Below are positions 1-62,262 of a DNA stretch of 64,000 bases, one piece after another. The DNA comes from Perkinsela sp. CCAP 1560/9 (lineage: Eukaryota > Protista > Euglenozoa: Kinetoplastea). The position numbers were made by a program, and so were the translations under genes. Position 1 is the first letter of the stretch. Each line of letters begins with the position of its first letter. The stretch covers positions 1,302,001-1,366,000 of the forward strand of contig CBFFSA010000001.1 of NCBI GenBank assembly GCA_965644495.1. The letters run 5' to 3'. The notes under the pieces are model-generated. The model made no database searches and was not told the DNA's origin. It saw nothing but the letters and a program-made list of their open reading frames with translations.

Positions 1-613
1 TTGCCACAAAAAATGATTGATAAAACTGTTTTGAGTTTCGATGCTCGCCTCAAAGCGTGTATAAGATTGAAAGGCGAAAAAGTGAAAAAATGGTACAGTG
101 CACACAATTATTAGTGTAACAATAATTCGTAAAACAAAAATTAGTAAATTTTTAATTAGTAAAACATTTTGCAAAATTCAGGTTTTACACCTTACATTTT
201 TTTGTTTTTTTCGGAATTCTATCTTTTTTTACGAAACGTTTTCAGATTACTATTATTCAGATTATGTCGCACGAAAGCGAGCAAGATTTCTGTGAGCAAG
301 ATTTTTATTAATATTATTTTTTGGGGGTGTTTTTTACTCTGTGCTACAGACACATGTTACTTTCCCCGCTCCTGATTTTTTTCTGAATCTCCGACTTTCT
401 TGTTCGTTATACTCCTATTTTTAAAAGACTTTCTCCGCTCCGCGAACGCGAAACATCGCTCTCTTGTATTTAAGAGATTTTTTTCATATTTAAGAAAATA
501 CTCATGTAGGGACATTGTATGGGAGGGGGTAAAAGTCAATCCCTTTTGGGGGAATATTCTTTGTAAGGATTTTCTTTGTAATACGCTTCACTGAAGCCTG
601 ACACACTCAGCAT

Positions 614-686
614 GGGGAAGCATGGTCGGGACCTCCTCGCGGTCTTCCCTAGCATTACCATTTTGCAGATGGTACTAACGCCGACC
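614..686 (+). ncRNA. HDV-like self-cleaving ribozyme (copy 1)
   Basis: P1 GGGGAAG/CUUCCCU with G1-U wobble; P2 GGUCGG/CCGACC; P3 ACC/GGU; L3 UCCUCGC identical to antigenomic HDV; P4 UACCAU/AUGGUA; J4/2 CUAA. The P1.1 partner is AG rather than GG. Confidence 0.85.
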
Positions 687-702
687 TTAGAGGAGGCAGC
701 CT

Positions 703-738
703 ACTCAAGCGACAGAAATACCGTTTCTGTAAAAATTG
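703..738 (+). other. Spliced-leader-exon-like motif
   Basis: TACTCAAGCGACAGAAATACCGTTTCTGTAAAAATTG resembles the kinetoplastid SL ...GATACAGTTTCTGTACTATATTG; no GT donor follows. Confidence 0.6.
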
Positions 739-3521
739 ATTTTATCAAGTTGGCAAATTTTTTGTGGCAGTGCAAAAATTAGTAAAACAAAAATTAGTGA
801 ATTTTTAATTAGTAAAACTTTTTTACTATTTTACAATAAAAGTTTTACTAATTTTTGCGAGCACTGTAAATGTTAAATATAAACTATCATGAATAATTTT
901 TTTGATTCCGGTTTTTAGCGCGCAAAGCCTTTGTGTTGAGATCTGCAAAATGCAACAAAAATCAGTTCAAACGGACACTTGGCTGAAAAGTTAGGTGGGG
1001 TGACTTTTGACTGCGGGGGGTTTATGTGTTCTTTCCTTCTCTCCGACAAATTACCTCTAAACACTCCGTGGCGTTCTATGTTGTCAAAAACTATTTCTTT
1101 TAATATCACCTTGTGTTTTTCAATTAGATCAGTAACATCTTTGTCAACTTTTTTCACTGTATGTTGCCGCTCGTAGTTAAAGCCCCTTTCTCTTTTTTTT
1201 CGTCTACCGCCATTATTCACAATGGCTTGAAAAAAAGCTGCACCCTTCTTGATCCTGGAAACCGCGCGAACACTTACCGAGTATTTTTCGCCGAGCTTCT
1301 CATCGGATTCGACTCATCAGATTGACATAGAGCCAGCTTCTGTTGAGTAGTTAAATGATTGTGTGTTATAATTTTTTTCTCGGGCGGCAATGTACTTGGG
1401 TTTTCTTTTATCAAACCGCTATAAGGTATGGGGTTTTATAGAGCACCGACTGTGGGGCAGGAGGAATGGTTGCCCGGTCAACCATGTCGCCCGTGCTGCA
1501 ACACAAAAAGAATTAAAAAAACTTTATGAACGGGTTTCCCCAGTTGGGAGTCTGGACGTGGAAAATATTGGCAACGGAGTCCGTCTCTATCTTCCCCTGT
1601 TCAGATTTCCCATAGTTTCGTACTATGACTCGTTTTGTTTTCTTGTACTATTACTTGTTTTTTATTTTGCTGGGACTCGATGAAAACTCGACTGGCCAAA
1701 AACAAATAAAAAAAGAGTTTGGAGGTTCAAATCAAAGACAAAATGCGTGCAATGGTCCGCAAAATGGTAAAGATACGGGGTCTGTAAACGGCTGTAGAGT
1801 TAATCAAGGACCGATTGTCACGACGAAGAGCTATTATTTCAGTACAAGGAAATTCCGCATTGGACTCATTGTGAACTAATGTGGTGAACCAAAAGTAGTG
1901 ATTCACTACATAAATGTAGTGAGCTAACCCCGTGTAGTGAATCACTACGGGTAAACTCCAGGGTATGAATCGGCGTATACCGTATACCCCCCCAGTAATA
2001 GAATCGATTTTGGGCCAAAATGGTCAAATTTCTGTTACTGGGGGGGTATGCTTTTTTGGTGGGAAAAGACCTTTTTGGTTCATGGGTGCATTTTTCTCCA
2101 GAAAGTGCAGATCTGCCTTTTGTATCTTAGCCCTCCCTTCATTACTCTATGGGCACTTAAGCAAATATTTATCGTTAACATCTCATAATTATCATCTTTG
2201 TTTACCCGAATTCTATCCTTACAGCGAAACAAATTTGATCATCCTATCAGCTAAAGTGTTGTATATCATGTCCTTCCACCTACCCTCTCTCATTAATTCT
2301 AATGAATATAATTATAAATTTTCTTTTTTGTTATACCGTGGAAACATTAATTAAGAGACACATTAAATAAGGGAACGCCAATTAAGGGAACACTAAGATG
2401 GTTAAAACCTGTTAGGTTTTGCCAGGATTTGCCAAGTTTTACCTGGTTTTGCCAGGACACCTATTTTTTGGGGCGCCATTTTGGGAGACGTGCCACGGCT
2501 TCAGGAAGGGGTATCTAGTAAAAGCAACGGCGTAGAAAGCTAGTATAGGTCCCAAACTCTCAAACTACTATAGGTGAAACGATTTTGAAAAACTATTTTT
2601 TAAGCCATGTTTTTCGCTAAGTTGACTTTTTTTAGTTTTCTTTTCAGAAAAAACTGAACTTGGCGGCCCCGCCCTGTTGATACCAGGGGGAGTCGTCCCC
2701 GAGTACGGGGGTGGAAAATGTGCGCCAAGACCTCGGCTACCCTTTCTGGGGGTGTATTTCGAAAAATATTATTTTCAAAATCTTCATTTTTTGTGGCGCA
2801 AAAAATGTTTTGCAGCGCACGATGGAGACCAAGTATGTTCTTCACTATTTTTGACAAAGTATTTTTCTTCGCCACGTCAATGAGGAATATGTGGGTTTTG
2901 CCAGGTTTTGCCTTTCATAGGTTTCAACCCTCTTAGGCGGGTGATGGTGTATTTTTACACGCTTAAAATGGCCAACGCTTAGCGATGGGGCTAGCCCCCG
3001 AATACAAGGGAAGATTGTATTCTTGGGGTGGTGGTGAGGCTTCAGCCCCTTTACTTGCTTCACCCTGAAGCCAATTAAGGAAACACTAATTTATTTAAGG
3101 GAATAATTATTTTTCGTCGATTTTTGGCATTTTCAGGCAATTAATAATTATTTTTTCCACCCATGGCCCAGGCTGAGATGATATTGAATACGAACTGAGT
3201 CTCATGAAACTAGCTCGGGTAAGTACATTAGTTCTCATTCTTGAACGACACGGATACCGTAAAAACAGATTGATACGCCCAAAAATGATAATTCCAAGAA
3301 TTGTGTTATTGAATGAGATGGTGAATGGATTGCTCTTTTTCAAGGGTTGGATTTTTGTTGCCTGAAGCCCAAGTTATCTAGGTTTTATCTGGGTTTACCC
3401 CAATTTAAAAACATTGTAGAAGTTTTTTATATGCAGACGAAGATAACAGACGCCCATATCAGTATTAGTTTCTGTAAATCAATAGGTACATAATGCACTT
3501 ATCTGAACTCATCTCACAAGG

Positions 3522-14557: not shown

Positions 14558-15287
14558 AAAATTAGTAAATTCTTAATTAGTAAAACATTTTGCAAAATTC
14601 AGGTTTTACACCTTACATTTTTTTGTTTTTTTCGGAATTCTATCTTTTTTTACGAAACGTTTTCAGATTACTATTATTCAGATTATGTCGCACGAAAGCG
14701 AGCAAGATTTCTGTGAGCAAGATTTTTATTAATATTATTTTTTGGGGGTGTTTTTTACTCTGTGCTACAGACACATGTTACTTTCCCCGCTCCTGATTTT
14801 TTTCTGAATCTCCGACTTTCTTGTTCGTTATACTCCTATTTTTAAAAGACTTTCTCCGCTCCGCGAACGCGAAACATCGCTCTCTTGTATTTAAGAGATT
14901 TTTTTCATATTTAAGAAAATACTCATGTAGGGACATTGTATGGGAGGGGGTAAAAGTCAATCCCTTTTGGGGGAATATTCTTTGTAAGGATTTTCTTTGT
15001 AATACGCTTCACTGAAGCCTGACACACTCAGCATGGGGAAGCATGGTCGGGACCTCCTCGCGGTCTTCCCTAGCATTACCATTTTGCAGATGGTACTAAC
15101 GCCGACCTTAGAGGAGGCAGCCTACTCAAGCGACAGAAATACCGTTTCTGTAAAAATTGATTTTATCAAGTTGGCAAATTTTTTGGGGCAGTGCAAAAAT
15201 TAGTAAAACAAAAATTAGTGAATTTTTAATTAGTAAAACTTTTTTACTATTTTACAATAAATGTTTTGCTAATTTTTTCGAGCACTG
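14558..15287. mobile_element. Second, left-truncated copy of the ribozyme/SL-motif MITE
   Basis: Near-identical to 137-866 at offset 14421; ends CACTG|TA. Confidence 0.85.
15035..15107 (+). ncRNA. HDV-like ribozyme (copy 2)
   Basis: Same sequence as 614-686. Confidence 0.85.
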
Positions 15288-21219: not shown

Positions 21220-21382
21220 AGTCGGAAGTACGTCCCCTACTTCCACGGCAAAGAGGGACAGTCCCTGCTAGCCGTCAGCCGGAAACGGGCATTTAAAAGG
21301 AAAATGTATGCCCGTTTCCGGGAAAAGAAATGAAGGGCTAGCAAAATGTACCAACAAGGTACAGAAACTGTATCTTTATCGT
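21220..21382 (-). ncRNA. SL RNA gene-like sequence, 5'-truncated, possibly a pseudogene
   Basis: ACGATAAAGATACAGTTTCTGTACCTTGTTG|GTACA has the SL core and donor at canonical spacing, a TGTAC/GTACA stem across the donor, then further hairpins and a short T-run. Confidence 0.55.
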
Positions 21383-28049: not shown

Positions 28050-30452
28050 ATGACAAATTCTCTTATCCTTCCAGGCGCAGCTCATTTGCACCATTCAGAC
28101 GTATATTCCCCTAGTATTGATAATTCTGTATCGCATGTGGTACCGACGTCTTCCATAGAAGAAAATGAAATATTCGAGTCTGTTTCTTCTCCGAAAAGAA
28201 GAAAAAGGAGATCGAATTCAAAAGAGCAGTCAAAATTCGTACAAAACGTGGAATTCACGAACGCAACTCACGATTCCTCGTGTGCAGAGTTACCGCACGA
28301 CAGTTGCAACGATCAGAAAAACACTTTATCTACTGCTCATCCATTACTCACTGTAACATCGCTTACAATAGAACACCTTCGGGAAAAACTTAAAACGTAT
28401 TTTCGATTTGATGATTTTCTACCGGGACAGCTGGAGGTAGTTCAATCTGTTCTACATGGTCGCTCTGTGATTGCATTGTTGCCCACGGGTTCGGGAAAGT
28501 CATTATGTTATCAACTTCCAGTGGCCATCCTTCGAGAGCACCATCCTTCGTGTTTCTGCTTAGTGATTTCTCCTCTAGTTTCGTTGATGCATGACCAAGT
28601 TGGTCATCTCCCTGCTTCTATTCCTGGTGTAGTGCTGACAGGTTCGCGAAAAACGGAAAATGTTTTTAATAACATACGCTCGAGAAAGTGTGCCGTAGTA
28701 TTTACTTCACCGGAACGCTTTTCGACCGATCAAATATTTCTTCAGGGACTGCTTCAGATTCGCGAGTTATGCGCCTTTGTTTGTGTTGATGAGGCTCATT
28801 GTATTAGCCAGTGGGGTTACGAGTTTCGCCCTAGCTATTTGGGCTTGTGTTCACGTATCCAAGAAATTTTGACGGCTACAAAGCCTATATTGGCAACGAC
28901 GGCCACTGCTACTTGCCGAGTGACGCAAGACCTGCAACGTATGTTGAAGCCGTGCTCAGTGGTTTCTCAGCTCTCACTACGCACCAATTTACTTTTACAT
29001 TCTCACCTATTGGATACTTCCGCATACGGCTCTGTTTTCGTGGAAAATTCGTTTCTATTCCAAAAAAGGCTTGATTTGCTGCTTTCGATTCTTCAAAGCG
29101 TTAATTCGTCAGAATCCATAATTATATATGTATCAACACAGCGACTGTCGGAAGAGGTAGCGACATTTTTGGCGAAGCAGCACACTTTTCTGGCTCGATG
29201 TTATCATGCGGGTATGTCGCGCAAAAATCGTATGGAATGTCAATCATCGTTTCTTAAGAATGATACACAAATCGTCGTGGCCACCGTAGCGTTCGGTATG
29301 GGTATTCACAAACCGGACGTTCGGGCCGTAATTCACTTTTACATGCCCTCTTCCATAGAGGAATATATTCAAGAAATCGGACGCGCTGGGCGTGACGGTA
29401 AGATTTCACACTGTCATGTTATTATAGATCGTGCAACCTATGCCAATCATCTCAGGCGCTTTATTGCCCCTGCTTTGGATTGTCCGCATGCCGAGGCACT
29501 TTGCGTACGATTGATGAAACCCTCCCATCAGAGGAGCAAAGTTCAATATCCTTTTGAAGCCGCACTTGATGTTTCTGATCTCTCTGTTGTAGCGGACGTG
29601 GATGAATCCCACGTCATGGGAATATGTTATATCTTATATCGCATGTTGCCCTCTGCTCTACGAATTGGTCCCTGTCGTGCTTCACTTGCGACACTTTGCG
29701 CTCGTCGCAGCCAATCCTTCCGTAAATCTATTCTGTCATCCGCGTGTACAAAGGATATAGGGGTTAGTTCAATTCTTAATCAACTAGCTATTCCCGATTA
29801 TTTCTTATCCTATATGCAAGAACTCGAAGGCGCTCTTCAAACTGGGGCCGCTCAACAAATTGATCTCTATCATGCTTGCTGTGTTACCCAACTGCAGTAC
29901 GACAATTTATCCGAGCGATTGCGGCAGTACGCAAAAGAACGAAATCTTTACGTACGATTTTACCGTCCACTACCTAGTGTAGTTCTCTCAAATGATGTTC
30001 AAGTTGATACACTAAGCTTTCTATCTCGTAATCTCGTTCGTGCGCTTTCTGATCGTAGAGCTTTGGATTTCACACGATTAGATAAACTTTACCGAATATT
30101 GCTTTCGCTTTTCTTGAATCAAGATTCTGAAAAATCTCACGAGTCTTTGAGTCATTACATGAGTTCTCTTCGCCCAAGTTGTTCTGGCGAAGATGATATT
30201 TCCGATAATTATATGTACATGCTTAACTCCCAAACAATCAGCAATGAGAATGAATCGTGTGTACGTTCTTTGGTAAAAAGTGCAAAGGAGTTGACCCTTT
30301 CTCCTATTCAATATTGTAAAGTTCTTTACGGCATTTCGACTCCTTCAATACATAGAGGTATCGGCTGTTTGGCTCCGTACTGGTGTAGGCTTTCCCATCT
30401 TGCCTTTGATTCGGTCTTAACATTGGTACAGGAAGTGGTTAATGCTTGCTAA
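28050..30452 (+). CDS. RECQL4: RecQ-family DNA helicase, RecQL4-like
   Basis: LPTGSGKSLCYQ, VDEAHCISQW..FRPSY, TATAT, YHAGM, ATVAFGMGI, QEIGRAGRDG..SHCH; C-terminal LYGISTP...YW...HLAF resembles RecQL4. Confidence 0.85.
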   Translation: MTNSLILPGAAHLHHSDVYSPSIDNSVSHVVPTSSIEENEIFESVSSPKRRKRRSNSKEQSKFVQNVEFTNATHDSSCAELPHDSCNDQKNTLSTAHPLLTVTSLTIEHLREKLKTYFRFDDFLPGQLEVVQSVLHGRSVIALLPTGSGKSLCYQLPVAILREHHPSCFCLVISPLVSLMHDQVGHLPASIPGVVLTGSRKTENVFNNIRSRKCAVVFTSPERFSTDQIFLQGLLQIRELCAFVCVDEAHCISQWGYEFRPSYLGLCSRIQEILTATKPILATTATATCRVTQDLQRMLKPCSVVSQLSLRTNLLLHSHLLDTSAYGSVFVENSFLFQKRLDLLLSILQSVNSSESIIIYVSTQRLSEEVATFLAKQHTFLARCYHAGMSRKNRMECQSSFLKNDTQIVVATVAFGMGIHKPDVRAVIHFYMPSSIEEYIQEIGRAGRDGKISHCHVIIDRATYANHLRRFIAPALDCPHAEALCVRLMKPSHQRSKVQYPFEAALDVSDLSVVADVDESHVMGICYILYRMLPSALRIGPCRASLATLCARRSQSFRKSILSSACTKDIGVSSILNQLAIPDYFLSYMQELEGALQTGAAQQIDLYHACCVTQLQYDNLSERLRQYAKERNLYVRFYRPLPSVVLSNDVQVDTLSFLSRNLVRALSDRRALDFTRLDKLYRILLSLFLNQDSEKSHESLSHYMSSLRPSCSGEDDISDNYMYMLNSQTISNENESCVRSLVKSAKELTLSPIQYCKVLYGISTPSIHRGIGCLAPYWCRLSHLAFDSVLTLVQEVVNAC

Positions 30453-37797: not shown

Positions 37798-39471
37798 CTA
37801 AACTTTAGGACCGATTCCGTACGATGAGAGAGGAGTAAACGTCAGACTCTGAGCGGATTTATAGCGCTCCTTTTGTCTTCGCGTCATTCCACGAAGTCGC
37901 TGGCGTAGATTCGTGATATCTTCAGCCTCTCGTCTCTGGAGTTCCAGTTCTTCAGTTGAGAGTACCTTACGAGGTCGGCCGCGTTTTCGCTTTTCTCCAG
38001 GTGCGCTTCTTTCGATTGTGGCGTTTGCTGTCGAATTTTCGTTCTCTTCTATTATATTGACGTCCCCTTCTGCGTTCCCCATGGATGAGGTATTAATTTC
38101 GTCGGAACCTTCATCATCCAAGAAAATCGCACCACTACGTAGACATATGTAAATGAGTTTGCAAATGCTTGTAGGCATCGAGACGTGACGGTCGGTTTTT
38201 TTTGCTGCCAAATAACACCACTGGAATTTCGGTTATTTCCCAGGAGGCCATAATCTGAGCTTGGGGAAGTTCTTGCATAGCCTGCACAATGTACGACACT
38301 TTTTTCTCTCGGAAAAGTGTTCGCGATGTGCAAATAACGTTGGAGATGGCTGAATTGAGGTCGGAACGCGCAAAGATGCGGGATACATCATCGTTGTAGA
38401 GCTGAATAGCGCGTTGTTTTAGGCCAGAGATTACAAACTGATCTGCAGGTTGAAAGACATGCGTCATTTTCTTGGGAATACGAACTACGTCGCAAGAAGA
38501 ACCAATAAGAATCTCATCAGTACCACTATGCTGAGTGGCTTCATCAATAATCAAAAGGGCGGGGGCAACGGGCTTCTTCATAGCTTCACGTTCGGAGGCA
38601 AGTCTCTCCTTAAAGCGACTCAAAAAAGTTGCCCACGTCGAGGCGTCTTGAAAATGAGATCCTTTCGGGGCACATTGTAGAACACGTGGGTCGCTACCAA
38701 CATTGACGAATACGCGACTCGTTCCCTGGAATATAAACTGTAACATTTTGATTTCTCCAGCTGCAGATGAAAGAACGTTGCAAGTGAAACCCTGCTTTTC
38801 ACGACGAACTGAAATTGTGCGGGACTCGCCTGGATCAATGCGTTCCCAGGTCCAAGTGGCATTTGCTTGTCCTAATCCCAGACACACAAAGAATTCGTCT
38901 GTGTTAAACACAAGCCCTTTTTCGCAACGATTTTTATAGCTTTCAAGCTGTGAAAAGAATGTTTTAGATGCCTCAACAACTTCATTCGGCGTAACAGTTC
39001 GATCGCTAGTAGCGTGGCGGACACGAATGTTATTTTGCTTCATCCAGTCCTTTGCCCATGATAGCGAAAACTTCAGAGGACCCCTCTTTAGGGATGTGGA
39101 TTTCGGGGAAGATTGCTCTTTGATACCGCGGGCCACACTAGCTACAAGAGCCGCGTACACTGGGACAGCTTGCTCCCTCATTTTGTCGAAAGCTTGGACA
39201 AGTGAAGATTCCTCTCCCGTAAGTAGGCCACGCCGGCCGCGACTACTGAGCGCATGCCCTTATATTAAGAAACGCAAGCAGCCGAAATTACTCGTCCAAA
39301 TTGATCCAAAAATCTCTCCATAACTAGTGCATTTTTACATGCACCTCGAGTGTTGTCAAAAAGCCATTCGCGCTCGTCCGTCGCTAAACCTTTCGAGGAC
39401 GGCTGACTTTTCTTCGTCTGATGGATCGAATTCGCTACCAAAAAATGCTGAGCAATGTCCTGGTTGACCAT
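37798..39471 (-). pseudogene. pogo-like (DDE_1) transposase with AT-hook tail, frameshifted
   Basis: FSLSWAKDWMK, VFNTDE, LLIIDEATQH, IPKKMTHVFQPAD (D33D); KRGRPRK in the downstream frame. Confidence 0.85.
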
Positions 39472-45340: not shown

Positions 45341-46906
45341 TGGTAATATGCAGTCAAACTGTACCCTAAATTTCATTTTTTTTTACTTTTTTTTGTCAAA
45401 AAAATATGTGTGATTAATTATTTACTTGATAGTTTTGAGTCATTTTCACCCACTTTTAAGCTTTGTTTACGTCTGAAACCATTGAATGGACTGCTCAGGG
45501 TGTAGACCTTTTGCGTGCTTGACGCTACTTACGTCAATTTTGCAAATAACGTCAGAGAATGTTGTTTCCTGGCTAGTAAATCACTCTTTCGGGGCTTATA
45601 CACAGTGTCTTCGCTGCAAAGAGAAACCGAGAAGCGATCAATGCTTCAAAAAACTCGAAGACGGTTCGAAGTGCCGCCTAAAAATTCCGAAATTTGGCCC
45701 CTTTTTTCCTTTAAACTGTCGAATTGTTGATAAATTTCGATGTTGGCTGCTTCTAGCGCAAGGTAACCTGCCCTTGAACGCAGCTTTGCAAGCGCTCAGG
45801 TCTCTTCGTTCAGTTCTTACAGACCTAAGTGAAATTGAACGCATATTCAGCATTCCCCGTTCCCCGCACATGCTCATGAAGTACGTTATGGTGGATGAGA
45901 CATACATTGGGAAACGCCTGCACCATCGCGGGAGACAAGTCCGCAAACAAAAGTTCTGGTTTATGACGGCTACAGAGGTTGATCCAAACACCGGGAAATC
46001 ATTGCAAACATACTGGGAGGCAACGGTTCGCCGAACGAGAGAGGTTTGCCACAGATTTGTCCGATCAGTCATAGAAAATAGAAATGCCATGGTAATTACT
46101 GATGAATGGGCTGCATATCGTGGAATCGATGCCTTTTGCCGACATTACACTATTTGCCACGCTGATGCATTCTCGCGAGAGCACTCCCCGCACGTCAACA
46201 TTCATATCAACAACGCAGAGTCTGCCCATGCCAGTGTAAAGGGTTACTGCAAGCGTTTTTTTCACAAATGGGGCAGAAGTTTGGAAAGCTCTCAGGCACG
46301 AGCGCATTTTATTTGCACAGTCTTCTTCAAGGCGGAAGCTAAAAAGCGTTTTCAGAACCTTATGACTGTTATGGCGAGATACTCCTCTGACAATAGCGCG
46401 GTATACGGAGATCAGTCAAATGAAGAAGATGCGGAAGTTTCCAGTGACTCTAGTGAGGACTTTCAGGAAGATTATGAAAGCCCAACCACGCGACTAGGTC
46501 GAGCGCTCACTGAACATATAAGACTCAAACGCAGATATGGAAGGGATGAAATGGGATTCCACAAGTATATGATAAAAAGTGCCACTGACCGCCACTACAC
46601 TATTTATGTTGGTCCTGGTGGTGCTCGATGCACTTGCCGTGACGGACGTCTGGGCAATCGATGTAAGCATATATATTTCATTTTGATGCGGGAACTTGGG
46701 GTGGATGAAAACCATTCAGTTCTATTAAAATCGGAATTTTCATCAGAAGACCTATCGAATTTGTTGTAGACGAGGCAGGAATTATCGGTAAATTGTCTTA
46801 TTCATATGCAAATTTGCGTAAAAACAAAAAAGGAACACATATGTGATGGAAATATACAGTTTTTAGAAAAAACAAATTTAGGGTACATTTTGACTGCAGT
46901 TGACCC
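45341..46906 (+). mobile_element. Intact Merlin/IS1595 transposon
   Basis: ~32-bp TIR (TGCAGTCAAA.TGTACCCTAAATTT), 8-9-bp TSD AAATATTT(T), inserted in a family A copy. Confidence 0.9.
45486..46769 (+). CDS. Merlin transposase with C-terminal SWIM zinc finger
   Basis: VMVDETYIG, VITDEWAAY, HYTICH, HINNAES; CTCRDGRLGNRCKH. Confidence 0.9.
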   Translation: MDCSGCRPFACLTLLTSILQITSENVVSWLVNHSFGAYTQCLRCKEKPRSDQCFKKLEDGSKCRLKIPKFGPFFPLNCRIVDKFRCWLLLAQGNLPLNAALQALRSLRSVLTDLSEIERIFSIPRSPHMLMKYVMVDETYIGKRLHHRGRQVRKQKFWFMTATEVDPNTGKSLQTYWEATVRRTREVCHRFVRSVIENRNAMVITDEWAAYRGIDAFCRHYTICHADAFSREHSPHVNIHINNAESAHASVKGYCKRFFHKWGRSLESSQARAHFICTVFFKAEAKKRFQNLMTVMARYSSDNSAVYGDQSNEEDAEVSSDSSEDFQEDYESPTTRLGRALTEHIRLKRRYGRDEMGFHKYMIKSATDRHYTIYVGPGGARCTCRDGRLGNRCKHIYFILMRELGVDENHSVLLKSEFSSEDLSNLL

Positions 46907-47588: not shown

Positions 47589-47661
47589 GGGGAAGCATGG
47601 TCGGGACCTACTCGCGGTCTTCCCTGGCACTACCATCTTACAGATCGTACTAAAGCCGACC
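47589..47661 (+). ncRNA. HDV-like ribozyme (copy 3, diverged)
   Basis: Same P1/P2/P3; GG P1.1 partner intact, L3 UACUCGC, J4/2 CUAA; followed by T7. Confidence 0.8.
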
Positions 47662-58329: not shown

Positions 58330-61300
58330 ATGGCAATTAATAAATGGGCGGAGGCGTCCGGACCTTTTGGGGGTTTCTTGGCGGTCAAAGAAAAACTCGG
58401 ATTGGCCACGTGTTGTCGGGGAAACCTGTTTCTACCTAAAAAGCGGAAATGGGGAGTAGCCAAACTCCGGCCGCGGGACCTGTTTCGAATGTCATGTCTT
58501 TCTTCTCCTGGAAAACGCTTTGCTGTTGCCTGGAGTATGTCATATGATTTACGTACGAGGTTGTCGGAGGGGACTGTTAAATCTATACTTCCGGACGGTA
58601 GACGCCTAGTGAAGTATGATTTAGTGGATGATCGCCTTTTCCTGTTTCCTCCGAAAGATGAACGAGTTCAAATTCTGGGTGGTAGGGTAGGTTTCTTGGG
58701 AAAATGGAAATCCAAACGGAATAGGAAACGCACCAACTGTCCTCGAAGTGGCTACCGGGGCCAGGGATCCGAGAAGAATGCTAAGAGAGGGGGTTTTACG
58801 ATAAGTACCCTAAACGTGGACACCTTGAAAGTCAAAGCGACTGATACTTTCACGCTCCGGAAGTCGATTATACTATATCAAGTGGCAGGTTTCATGAGGA
58901 GTCAACATGTTGACCTCATGGCGCTTCAGGAAACAAGGTTAAAATTTGATGATAAGGATTCTATTTTACATAGGCAGCTCTTTTTAAAAGGAATCTCACT
59001 TCACCTCTACCTGATGAGTGCAATCAACGGGTACAATGGCATGGCATTTTTGAGCACTAAACCTCTATCTGTTCAGAAGATTAGCGATCGCATTATGAGT
59101 GGACACTTCATTCTAGGTGAAACGAAAGCCTGCATTTACAACGTCTATTCACCTACAGCGAAAGCTAGCAAATCGACGCAACAAAGTTTTGACGAAGACT
59201 TATTCGATGCACGGTATGACGATGATAGTATGGTAAGAATCATTAGTGGAGATCTAAATTCGTCGCTACTCAACCCAGGGGGGAGAAAATGTTAAACAAA
59301 GCGTGCAAAACAGTTACGAAAGCTACCATGCTCGCTTGGAGCTCAATCTGTACATGAAGTCTGTTGTGCAAGAAGAAAATGGACGTATAGGTTTCCTAAA
59401 ACGCGTCGGTATCCAGAGGGAATGACCAAGCAACTTGACCACATCGTTGTTAACAAAATGTTTTTCTCTTCTATACGACCCACGAAATGCCACATCGCAC
59501 CAATACCTATGAGACATTGTGCTTTGACATCGAACTTCAATTTTCGATGGAAAATTCAAAAACTGTCTCAACAAAAGCCTTTTTGGGAGGCATTGAAAAA
59601 TGATGAAATCCGAAATAAGTTTGTTTCGAAAGTAAAGGAATCATTAAAATCTGTGCCAAAAATAATTCGGTCGGAGGATCAGAAGTCCGAAAACGCGCCA
59701 AAAATGGAAATAGATAAGGCCAGCGAAATATCTTGGACAAGACTCTCTTCTGCTGTTAGAGTGTCCGCATCTAGTCTGCCTAAGAAAACTAGTAACGCAA
59801 AAGAAATTCGCATTGATGCTGAAACAGATCTATCCGGATTTGACATGAAGTCTCTGCTGAAGATTGTGGGCAATAAAACTATGTTTGCTACTGCATCAAA
59901 AGAATTCTCTGAAAAGCTGGACTCCTCTATTATAAATGAGTGCGACGCCCTGGAAAAAGAGCTTAAATCAACTCCAAAATCCGCGTACAGAACAATTCGA
60001 AAAATTGTAGTGGACAAGAAGCAAGATTTTCCTCTCTTTTCAACTACGGTAAACAGCAGCCTTAATATAGTGAAGAATCATTTCAGCATGTTAGGGGGTA
60101 GTGCTTACAAAGGTCATGAAGCAATAAGTTTACCTACTTCACCAAAACGACTGGCAAAAATTGATGATGGTGAATTTCGAGTGGAGGAACTAACTGCTGC
60201 GATGGTAAAGGTTAAGTCAGGAAAAGCTACAGGCGATGATAATATCCCGGTTGAAGCTCTACATGCTATTTCAGCTGATCAAGACTTGCGTAATGCTCTC
60301 CTGGATATAATGAACGAAGTACGAAAAACCGGAAAATCGGATGAATCTTGGAAATCGATATTGCAGGTCCCATTGCCAAAGAAAGGTAATTTGCGCTCAC
60401 TCACAAATTGAGGACCACTCTGTATTGTGAATCATGTAGTGAAGGTTTTGAATCGAATCATTTTAGACAGAATACAACCAGCAGTGGAAAGTTCGCTTCG
60501 CTGGAATCAATTCGGCTTTCGACCTAACCGCTCAACAGCTGGCGCTCAGGCGACGTTTTTAGAAATAATGGAAAAATCACGACGAGGGGCTAGGGTGTTC
60601 GTCTGTTTCGTCGACTTTCAACAAGCCTTTCCTTCATTATCATTCGCTGCGATAAAAGAGACATTACGTGCCTTCGATATTCCCGAAAATCTCAGTTCTA
60701 CGATCATGTGTATTTATCAAAATCTCAAATCGCACGTGAAAACACCATACGGTAACACAGACTCATTTCCACTTTTACAGGGGACTCTTCAAGGTGACGT
60801 TCTGGCCCCATACCTGTTTATTATGGTTCTTGATCGTATTTTGGTTGAATCTATCGACATAAATCGCTTAGGGCTTGTGACACATAGCTCAGGAACTAGG
60901 AGCAGAGGCCTAAAGGAACTGCGTGTATCTGATATAAATTATGCGGATGATATAGTTCTCTTCTCTGAATCCAAGGAGGAGCTAAGCACAATGTTGCACA
61001 AACTTAAAACTTCCGCAGAAAAAGCTAATTTGAAAATAAATGTCGGACCAAACAAAACGGCATGGATGACACTAGGTAAAGTTAAGGGTGATGGAAGACC
61101 TTTGCAAGTAGTGACACTCGGCGATATACCAAAAGTCAAACAAAAAAAAAATATACCAAAAGTTACATCTTATCGCTACTTGGGTAGCACTCAGAACGAG
61201 GAGGATCGCAGCTCAAACTCACAAGAACGTGTACGATTAGGTTTGGCAATAGTGCACAAACTCAAATCCGTATGGAGTTCTACTATATCACCAAAAAGCA

Positions 61301-62262
61301 AATTACACATCTTTAAGCCCCTCGTTCAATCAGTGGTCTATTATAATCCAGGGACTTGGAATTTAAATCAGAAAGAGCTACATGAAGTGGAAGTCCAAAT
61401 GAACAGAATGAGTAGGGTCGTATTGGGAGTCAAGTGCTCGAAAGAGGCGCATTGCAGAGTAGACTCTCTTTACCCCACTGACCTAAAGCCCAATACTGTG
61501 ATACAATTACAACGTGCTTCGCTAGTAGGCCACCTTATTCGTCACCCTACTCTATTCGTAACTGCCGTACTATGTAGAACGAATGATGAGAGTTCCAAAC
61601 CCTCGCTATCAGAAAGATGTGCAAAAGAGTTACATTCTGACGTATCTGAGATTCTAAAACTTGGTCAAAATCGGTCTCAATGGTGCAAGAAACTTGCAAA
61701 TCTTCAAAATCATCTTGAACTCAGGCCCTCGTACACTAAAACAACTTCAAAACTATGGGAAAATCTTTTGCTAAAGGGGGTAAACAAGGGGTGCTACGAA
61801 ACCCTACAATACATTGAAGAAGGGCGGCAACCATTTCCAATCGGGCCAAATGAAACACACATTTATACAGATGGAGCACGAATCGTTAAAAATGATGAAA
61901 CTCACACAGGTTGTGGGGTAGTCTGCCTACGCCGCCGCGAGCCCTCTATATCTCTTGGGTTAAAACCTCCTCATGCATTCTCTCAATCTATTCAGGAAGT
62001 CGAATCCTTTGCCGCGCACGAGGCTCTTCTCATCGCATTGTCCTACGACGGAGATGTCATTTTGCACACGGACTCTGAGTATGTTTGGGATTTCTTTCAT
62101 GGAGCTATCTATAGGTTCAGATTCATAGGATTTAAATCGTTTGAGGGAGGCGCTATACTTCAGAAATTGCAAGAAACATATATTTCGCTAAGAGGGACAA
62201 AGCGCTTCTACTGCGTAAAAGTTAGAGCGCATAACGAAAATCCGTTTACCCAAGAGGTGTGA
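58330..62262 (+). pseudogene. Non-LTR retrotransposon, single APE-RT-RNase H frame with two in-frame stops
   Basis: TLNV, LQETR, YSPT, GDLNS, QLDHI; QFGFR, FVDFQQAF, GTLQGDVLAPYLF, YADD; IYTDGA, HTDSEY, VRAH. All three ORFs share one frame (stops at 59293 and 60409); 3' end cut by a SINE. Confidence 0.9.

Follow-up and report, generated by a model that had tools for sequence, protein, structure and literature searches.

Here we describe a self-cleaving ribozyme fold of the hepatitis delta virus (HDV) type, canonical in its resemblance to that of the virus, which is present in more than 100 copies in the nuclear genome of the kinetoplastid Perkinsela sp. CCAP 1560/9, is carried by unrelated families of DNA transposons and is conserved above its surroundings. 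The copy under study occupies positions 614-686 of the window, i.e., the whole stretch of 64,000 nucleotides that was analyzed (contig CBFFSA010000001.1, positions 1,302,001 to 1,366,000, forward strand), and lies within a 771-bp miniature inverted-repeat transposable element (MITE). We lean, with moderate confidence, to the view that this ribozyme belongs to a small cassette which would spread selfishly into DNA transposons and be multiplied by them, the last of these steps being the less sure.

Eukaryotic HDV-like ribozymes are known from the 5′ ends of retrotransposons, from a few introns and from the trypanosomatid Pr77 sequences. A full-text literature search found no report of HDV-like or self-cleaving ribozymes in eukaryotic cut-and-paste transposons. 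The family described here would represent either a new small mobile module colonizing DNA transposons, or transposons that manage their transcripts by self-cleavage in a polycistronic genome. Furthermore, its natural variants (GG, AG and GA at P1.1, variants of L3, swaps in P4) constitute a ready mutational series.

The HDV-Like Fold

614..686, forward strand: HDV-like self-cleaving ribozyme; predicted cut 5′ of G614, catalytic C at C675; 110.6 bits with covariance model R1 (see below)

Read from the sequence, P1 pairs G614-G620 with C644-U650 over 7 bp and places a G1:U wobble (G614:U650) at the cleavage site; P2 pairs 624-629 with 681-686 (6 bp) and is joined to P1 by a J1/2 of sequence CAU; P3 pairs ACC (631-633) with GGU (641-643) around the loop L3, UCCUCGC (634-640); P4 is an 8-bp hairpin (656-663 with 667-674); and J4/2 is CUAA, of which C675 is the first base. 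P1.1, of sequence AG (651-652), comprises the pair C635-G652 and the mismatch C636·A651, that is, one Watson-Crick pair. P1, P1.1, P2, P3 and P4 therefore stand in the canonical order of the nested double pseudoknot, and the complete fold proposed in an earlier note on this DNA was recovered helix by helix. The same note had remarked that P3 and L3 are identical to those of antigenomic HDV, and indeed the 14-nt ACCUCCUCGCGGUC is the same in both (bioRxiv 10.1101/2022.09.17.508400). It had also singled out the AG that replaces GG at P1.1 in this copy and in a second one of the window: the weakening of P1.1 is real, but it is a trait of the whole transposon family to which both copies belong (family A, described below) rather than a peculiarity of the two.

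The window was searched with a generic HDV descriptor devoid of any sequence motif, which demanded a 7-bp P1 starting with G, a P2 of 5-7 bp, a P3 of 3 bp and an L3 of 7-8 nt, together with one or more P1.1 pairs, a stem for P4 and, ahead of the 3′ strand of P2, C-N-R-A. On either strand it matched only 614-686 and 15035-15107, the two family A copies, and it gave no match on either strand of 55 simulated Markov-1 sequences of 64 kb. In addition, a 13-base core motif occurs three times in the window against 0.02 expected. Chance as the source of the fold at 614-686 is ruled out by the descriptor and the simulations. Altogether, the site is a genuine HDV-like ribozyme as regards its fold, which is confirmed, and it is predicted to cleave.

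The Host Element

The ribozyme resides in an element, the family A MITE, whose parts are the following.

94..95, no strand: TA target-site duplication, left copy (TA on both sides; the empty site has a single TA)
96..866, forward strand: 771-bp non-autonomous inverted-repeat element, family A MITE, pogo-type derived, starting with CAGTGC and ending with GCACTG
196..266, forward strand: pyrimidine-rich tract followed by AG dinucleotides and ATG, within the part common to the autonomous element (read from the sequence)
477..737, forward strand: ribozyme cassette, about 261 bp that are absent from the autonomous partner (alignment to locus L124, junctions placed by eye)
769..866, forward strand: right terminal inverted repeat with an internal mirror copy, i.e., sub-terminal repeats (repeat pairs I1-I5)
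867..868, no strand: TA target-site duplication, right copy (TA flank; empty site)
14558..15287, forward strand: second MITE copy, with its ribozyme at 15035-15107

The 771-bp element entered a Tc1-like transposase gene (Pfam DDE_3 and HTH_Tnp_Tc3_2) at the TA of its stop codon. An empty site is preserved in L122, a 97% identical sister of the interrupted transposon, where the sequence runs ATGG TA AATGTT; since L122 reads through with one TA, the element is a true TA-duplicating insertion. When its ends were searched genome-wide (left 505 bp, right 124 bp), about 11 ribozyme-bearing copies were found, together with four 2.37-kb elements with the same ends. One of the latter, L124, encodes a 666-aa open reading frame (ORF) with a Pfam DDE_1 match at 32 bits, of pogo type. 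The left end of these autonomous copies matches 96-253, and 196-266 probably corresponds, from its sequence, to the trans-splice acceptor and the start of the lost transposase gene.

The family A MITE thus has the TA duplication, the terminal inverted repeats and the autonomous DDE relative with the same ends that characterize MITEs of the Tc1/mariner superfamily. The Tc1-type MITE of the earlier note is accordingly a TA-duplicating member of that superfamily, but a pogo-derived one and not Tc1 proper; the DDE_3 domain (Tc1 proper) belongs to the transposon in which the MITE landed, not to the MITE. As for the duplicate reported at 14558-15287, it is a second copy with its ribozyme, 100% identical over element bases 41-505 and 97% identical over the last 124 bp including the flanking TA, but it is devoid of the first 40 bp of the element.

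Compared with L124, the MITE has lost the ORF and gained the ~261 bp of 477-737, which are bounded by imperfect direct repeats of 10-11 bp where L124, by eye, has a single copy. None of the four autonomous partners carries a ribozyme; therefore, the ribozyme arrived in family A within the extra ~261 bp.

The interrupted Tc1-like element is itself an autonomous transposon of ~1.3 kb (window 1-95 and 867-1017, with its upstream part in L063, 489-3095), with a 334-aa DDE_3 transposase, inverted repeats made of G/C runs and at least 40 related copies in the genome. It has received two independent nested insertions, namely a family D′ MITE, in turn holding a third small MITE, and the family A MITE. 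The idea that two ribozymes bracketing its transposase ORF form a processing device was discarded, as both lie in separately nested MITEs and sister copies exist with neither.

A Ribozyme Family Dispersed over the Genome

All the comparative evidence comes from this single genome (21 Mb, 110 contigs). BLAST with the ribozyme region hit 42 places, and the covariance model R1, built from 24 copies (alignment A1), gave at least 126 matches, of which 86 reach E<1e-10. The survey of host elements covers part of these matches: some 50 further matches were examined with flanks of 100 bp on each side, and six of these with flanks of ~500 bp. Host elements were defined for families A, B, D′ and F and in part for D; families E, G and H and several singletons stand outside this set. 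Between families, homology extends from about 14 nt before G1 to the last base of P2. Related cassettes are present in at least four, and probably five, inverted-repeat transposon families, belonging to two or more superfamilies.

One further copy lies in the window:

47589..47661, forward strand: third window ribozyme, in a TA-flanked family B MITE; 109.7 bits with R1; GG at P1.1, UACUCGC as L3

Family B elements are TA-flanked, measure ~710-890 bp and have an inverted repeat starting with CTCCCTCTC; all of them contain the ribozyme, including subfamilies only 72-81% identical. Family D′ is TA-flanked too, with the inverted repeat CAGTCACCCC, and family D, partly resolved, is a related and very short element. 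Family F (~900 bp) has the ends CAGGGGTCC, an 8-bp target duplication as in hAT elements, and one ribozyme plus half a copy. A hAT-like non-autonomous element with these ends is found at L130 (contig 1, ~209.9-211.2 kb); it is flanked by the 8-bp duplication GTTATATT, has three near-identical copies in the genome and contains a full ribozyme and an internally deleted one, 108 nt apart.

Tandem ribozyme units or part units occur at four loci (L084, L128, L130 and L125), with a spacing of 108-148 nt. On contig 9 (L131 and L128, 217.9-222.0 kb) two tandem ribozyme pairs stand ~2.3 kb apart on the same strand; they are duplicated 55 kb away, at ~274-276.6 kb, and the second pair directly follows the stop codon of a 165-aa ORF. 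That these pairs flank a transposase was considered and rejected, since no long ORF lies between them and the 165-aa ORF has no Pfam match. A 1692-bp unit is repeated in tandem at least 12 times on contig 2, at ~618.8-638.3 kb (L117); in every unit the 3′ half of a family B ribozyme is found together with an incomplete right end and a left part, both from family B. Outside this genome, a gapped core pattern run once against metagenomes retrieved two contigs, both of them chance matches according to R1.

Structural Conservation and Constraint

Alignment A2 gathers 84 ribozyme copies. In it, 88.3% of the cells assigned to helices are paired (88-93% across copy sets), against 32-53% when the 3′ partners are slid by one to three columns. 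Changes on both sides of a pair are found in P4 (C-G to U-A in 14 rows, U-A to G-C in five, and two further pairs), in P1 (three pairs, one row each) and in P1.1, where C-G becomes U-A in two rows of F-type copies; a compensatory U-A is carried by L081-83 and L096. Cells changed on both sides number 31, against 14.1 in shuffles, and the covariation score (0.127 vs 0.109) lies above all 500 shuffles.

The positions at which the chemistry is expected to take place are likewise preserved. The partner of G1 makes a G:U pair in 60 of 77 distinct copies and a G:C pair in seven, the base at -1 is U in 74/84, and nearly all copies keep the catalytic C, which is lost in the decayed A′ ones. All helices are perfect, with G1 and the catalytic C, in 28 of the 84 copies, and in 17 of these P1.1 is complete as well; both of its pairs are present in families D, D′, E and F. 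Finally, identity between families reaches 78-92% in the ribozyme (73 nt), as opposed to 45-68% in the 74 nt upstream within the same cassette (Fisher p from 2e-4 to 2e-6 in five of six family pairs), which argues for selection on the ribozyme itself.

The Cassette and Its Spliced Leader-Like Motif

Around the ribozyme of the family A MITE the cassette contains the following features, which include stretches resembling the exon of the spliced leader (SL).

567..584, forward strand: degenerate upstream SL-like block, aligning with the clearer blocks of L009, L011, L127 and family B
585..597, forward strand: short hairpin with a stem of 5 bp and a loop of 3 nt, which separates the SL-like block from the leader; identified by eye
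598..613, forward strand: conserved leader ending in AU before the cleavage site; leaders of the GACACMCTCARCAT type recur across families
703..731, forward strand: SL-like motif, a decayed copy of SL exon bases 2-30, with no GU donor

The resemblance to the spliced leader that the earlier note had seen near the ribozyme is well founded: the motif starts 17 nt after the ribozyme, 21 of its 29 positions agree with the SL exon of the organism itself, and the alignment score, 15, exceeds the highest of the shuffles, 12. Within it, 713-719 can pair with 724-730 in a 7-bp hairpin. Better matches exist elsewhere (22/24 in L029, 23/29 in L125, 18/22 in family B), and taken alone the upstream block at 567-584 does not align to the SL with a score above shuffles. 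In every family the similarity stops at exon base 30, the final 8 bases of the exon and the donor having no counterpart, and what follows the motif does not resemble the intron of the SL RNA. A working mini-exon requires the full 38-nt exon and a GU donor; here, neither CCTTGTTG nor GT is found.

The usual order of the cassette is SL-like block, short hairpin, leader and ribozyme, the block lying ~45 nt upstream of the ribozyme in most other families. In family A a block is found on each side, decayed upstream (567-584) and clearer downstream; the order ribozyme-then-SL is also seen in L125 and between the tandem ribozymes of L128, and in family B the sequence downstream of the ribozyme is free of SL-like blocks. 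Hairpins can be drawn by eye at the equivalent place in other families, with different stem sequences, and RNAalifold returned no consensus pairs on a MAFFT alignment of the upstream region. The possibility that the hairpin and leader come from the intron of the SL RNA was discarded, as the alignment scores are no better than those of shuffles.

Since all the blocks share an end at exon base 30, they would descend from one old exon copy which, most simply, came from an RNA that had been trans-spliced. SL-like motifs are therefore most likely relics and not working leaders.

The true SL RNA gene was located at L120 (contig 1, ~661.3-661.7 kb), with at least two units ~297 bp apart; its 38-nt exon starts with AACT and is followed by GTATG, and a tRNA-like sequence lies downstream on the other strand. 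There is, in addition, a dispersed repeat headed by the last ~23 bases of the SL exon plus the donor GTA, which occurs at 119 places (67 forward, 52 reverse), one of them in the window at 21349-21374 on the minus strand. These dispersed heads, made of SL and donor, accord with a trans-spliced RNA as the source of the SL-like blocks.

A Probable Selfish Cassette or a Possible Working Part of Transposons

HDV-type ribozymes cut at their own 5′ edge and need only the sequence downstream of the cut. Therefore, any transcript that crosses the element rightwards should be cleaved at the U613/G614 junction. In kinetoplastids, polycistronic read-through transcripts are to be expected, and the transcript cut 5′ of G614 could be a host polycistronic one or one trans-spliced at the acceptor of the element itself. 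Of the two products, the upstream one would end in a 2′,3′-cyclic phosphate and the downstream one would begin with the ribozyme and bear a 5′-OH; cleavage would probably be slowed by the P1.1 A·C mismatch in family A, and by the A in L3 in family B. In our favored reading, the cassette would be a selfish module for RNA processing, which spreads by being copied into DNA transposons or inserted into them and is then amplified passively by their transposition, the SL-like motifs being left over from an RNA that once carried the spliced leader.

One locus bears indirectly on the cleavage step. In L025, an AAAA microhomology marks the junction between a ribozyme with 12 additional nt and the purine-rich tail of a poly(A) retroelement, and this ribozyme copy starts exactly at G1, right after the 23-nt A run of the preceding copy. 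It looks like a template-switch retro-copy, for a start at G1 is what a reverse transcriptase would make when jumping onto an RNA whose 5′ end is G1. L025 may thus be read as a hint that relatives of the ribozyme cleave in vivo. L025 and L026 lie on contig 20, at ~148.6-150.4 kb, within a stack of 5′-truncated tail copies.

Several observations weigh against the reading of a selfish cassette. The Rfam model RF00094 gives the site 22.4 bits (E 0.26), against a gathering score of 50, as is to be expected of a model that cannot score the pseudoknot and assumes a long P4; a scan of the window with Rfam returned nothing at gathering score, and seven relatives had no Rfam match at E<=1. The covariation is supportive of the helices but not decisive: the pairs with change on both sides (8) are not above shuffles or slid controls, and all rows come from one genome; compensatory changes are present in P4, P1 and P1.1. 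P1.1 is reduced to one Watson-Crick pair in families A and B, whose copies may be slow or dead. Individual family A copies show uncompensated changes in P1, P3 and L3, and these, together with the loss of the catalytic C in A′, indicate that individual MITE copies decay freely, as expected if a ribozyme in a MITE escapes selection. No clean free copy of the cassette with target duplications was found in the partial census. A mobility of the cassette in its own right is hypothetical, and the direct repeats at its borders are imperfect. Lastly, the constant presence of the ribozyme in family B and its occurrence in several superfamilies would fit a benefit to the transposons at least as well as hitch-hiking.

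This last point introduces the explanation that survives best after that of a selfish cassette, and that we hold only as a tentative possibility. According to it, several DNA transposon superfamilies of this kinetoplastid (pogo-like, Tc1-like, TA-targeting with CTCCCTC ends, and hAT-like) would use a shared ribozyme cassette as a working part, which cuts the RNA of the element free of the host pre-mRNA in a polycistronic genome; alternatively, cleavage downstream of the transposase gene might generate a 3′ end, or the two arms of the inverted repeat might be parted, so that read-through RNA forms no long hairpin triggering RNA interference. The MITE copy would be a retained or relic version of such a part. 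If true, HDV-like ribozymes would gain a new role, and DNA transposons would be seen to have adapted in a new way to genomes that lack gene-specific promoters. The ribozyme is indeed shared by four inverted-repeat families at the least, and probably by five, which span two or more superfamilies; it is retained by the family B lineage through a divergence to 72-81% identity, is conserved beyond its flanks, and in families A, B, D′ and F lies nearer to the right end and points to it, in family A within the former 3′ untranslated part. The neighboring ORFs, moreover, are on the ribozyme strand in ~17 cases against 7, although this orientation bias is weak and based on raw ORFs. Nevertheless, the four autonomous family A partners and the Tc1-like autonomous elements examined have no ribozyme, a MITE moves without RNA, and a 3′ end made by a ribozyme would have no poly(A). 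Nor was a partner of the TnpB/Fanzor type found that could use such an RNA. An omega-RNA-like guide extending from the ribozyme to the right end was set aside for the same reason: no match to PF07282, the zinc-ribbon family of TnpB, was obtained in the genome, by a 60-position domain scan that cannot prove absence.

We regard as improbable that the cassette is a replicon comparable to retrozymes, in which one-ribozyme units of ~110-150 nt would be transcribed from copies in tandem or in partial duplication, cut to unit length, ligated into circles and copied into DNA, the MITE holding ~1.3 units. The ends left by HDV-type cleavage can be joined by RtcB-type ligases, tandem units with the required spacing (108-148 nt) exist at L084, L128, L130 and L125, and SL-like blocks stand on both sides of the family A ribozyme. 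However, these two blocks are strongly diverged, most copies, that of the family A element included, have a single ribozyme, and whole units do not form long arrays, the one of 1692-bp units on contig 2 containing half a ribozyme only.

Still less probable is the device suggested by the earlier note, by which the ribozyme would cut a read-through transcript and so offer the SL-like motif downstream of it to the following RNA as its leader. The SL similarity and the order ribozyme, 16 nt, SL-like motif are real in family A, and the order recurs in L125 and L128. Because the cut falls 5′ of the ribozyme, however, the motif would stay internal, behind an uncapped and structured 5′-OH head of 73 nt; it is deprived of exon bases 31-38 and of the GU donor, and between it and the inverted repeat there is no coding sequence. 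In most families, furthermore, the block is upstream, where it would be cut off, and in family B none is downstream. This part of the earlier proposal is not supported.

Least probable of all is that the sequence is an inactive fossil, which once cleaved in another context and is now neutral MITE sequence: the P1.1 mismatch is fixed in family A, L004, L005, L008 and L009 have uncompensated damage and the A′ copies lack the catalytic C, but both family A copies of the window keep all the other helices and the catalytic C, and the natural HDV-like ribozyme of CPEB3 still cleaves with a one-pair P1.1.

Other Features of the Window

The genes flanking the elements include one with a Tc-38 (p38) domain, which is typical of trypanosomes. 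An ORF at 28050-30452 encodes an 800-aa DEAD-box helicase; an identical protein is encoded on a 42-kb contig of the ENA assembly ERZ24900291, which places this organism, or one very closely related to it, in that sample. Further mobile elements are indicated by a DDE_1 ORF at 38135-39181, a transposase-like ORF at 45486-46769 in which a DDE domain of IS1595 type accompanies a SWIM zinc finger (~800 bp downstream of this ORF is the family B MITE that holds the third ribozyme), and a reverse transcriptase with RNase H at 60427-62262.

Comparison with Known Systems

In fold and core sequence the closest resemblance is to the antigenomic type of HDV ribozyme, with which ours shares the nested double pseudoknot, the 7-bp P1 with its G1:U pair, the 14 nt of P3 and L3 (bioRxiv 10.1101/2022.09.17.508400) and the J4/2 CUAA, while the J1/2 region begins with CAUGG in both. 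The sequences of P1, P2 and P4 differ, P4 being here a short 8-bp hairpin, and the two P1.1 C-G pairs of the viral ribozyme are replaced by A·C and C-G. Moreover, the setting here is nuclear DNA, inside a transposon.

In its biology the ribozyme comes nearest to L1TcRz/Pr77, the hallmark of the trypanosomatid retroposons L1Tc, ingi, NARTc and SIDER, where it starts with C1 at the 5′ end of the element (PMC3185411, PMC4035085). Both systems consist of a multi-copy HDV-like ribozyme dispersed in a kinetoplastid genome; Pr77 cuts read-through co-transcripts, and SIDER2 has two tandem signatures, like the tandem units found here. Compared by description only, our ribozyme differs in its G at +1, in its canonical HDV L3 and in its location, internal to cut-and-paste DNA transposons and, in family A, within an inverted-repeat element; it departs in both first base and position from Pr77, which comprises the first 77 nt of a retroposon of the L1Tc/ingi clade. 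The 5′ ribozymes of the animal non-LTR retrotransposons R2, RTE and Baggins also have an HDV-like fold and free the RNA of the element from the host co-transcript, but they define the 5′ end of an RNA that is reverse transcribed, whereas the present one lies ~520 bp inside a DNA element for which an RNA intermediate is not required.

The mammalian CPEB3 ribozyme has a similarly weakened P1.1, effectively of one pair, with which slow cleavage is expected; in contrast to the ribozyme described here, it is single-copy, intronic, not borne by a transposon and unrelated in sequence. The retrozymes of plants and animals are likewise small ribozymes on non-autonomous mobile elements, but they are hammerheads placed in direct repeats and move by means of circular RNA (PMC4918200); the family A element has one ribozyme instead of two in direct repeats. 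Finally, bacterial IStrons offer a precedent for a ribozyme lodged inside a DNA transposon, although of a different kind, since theirs is a group I ribozyme that splices, and in bacteria.

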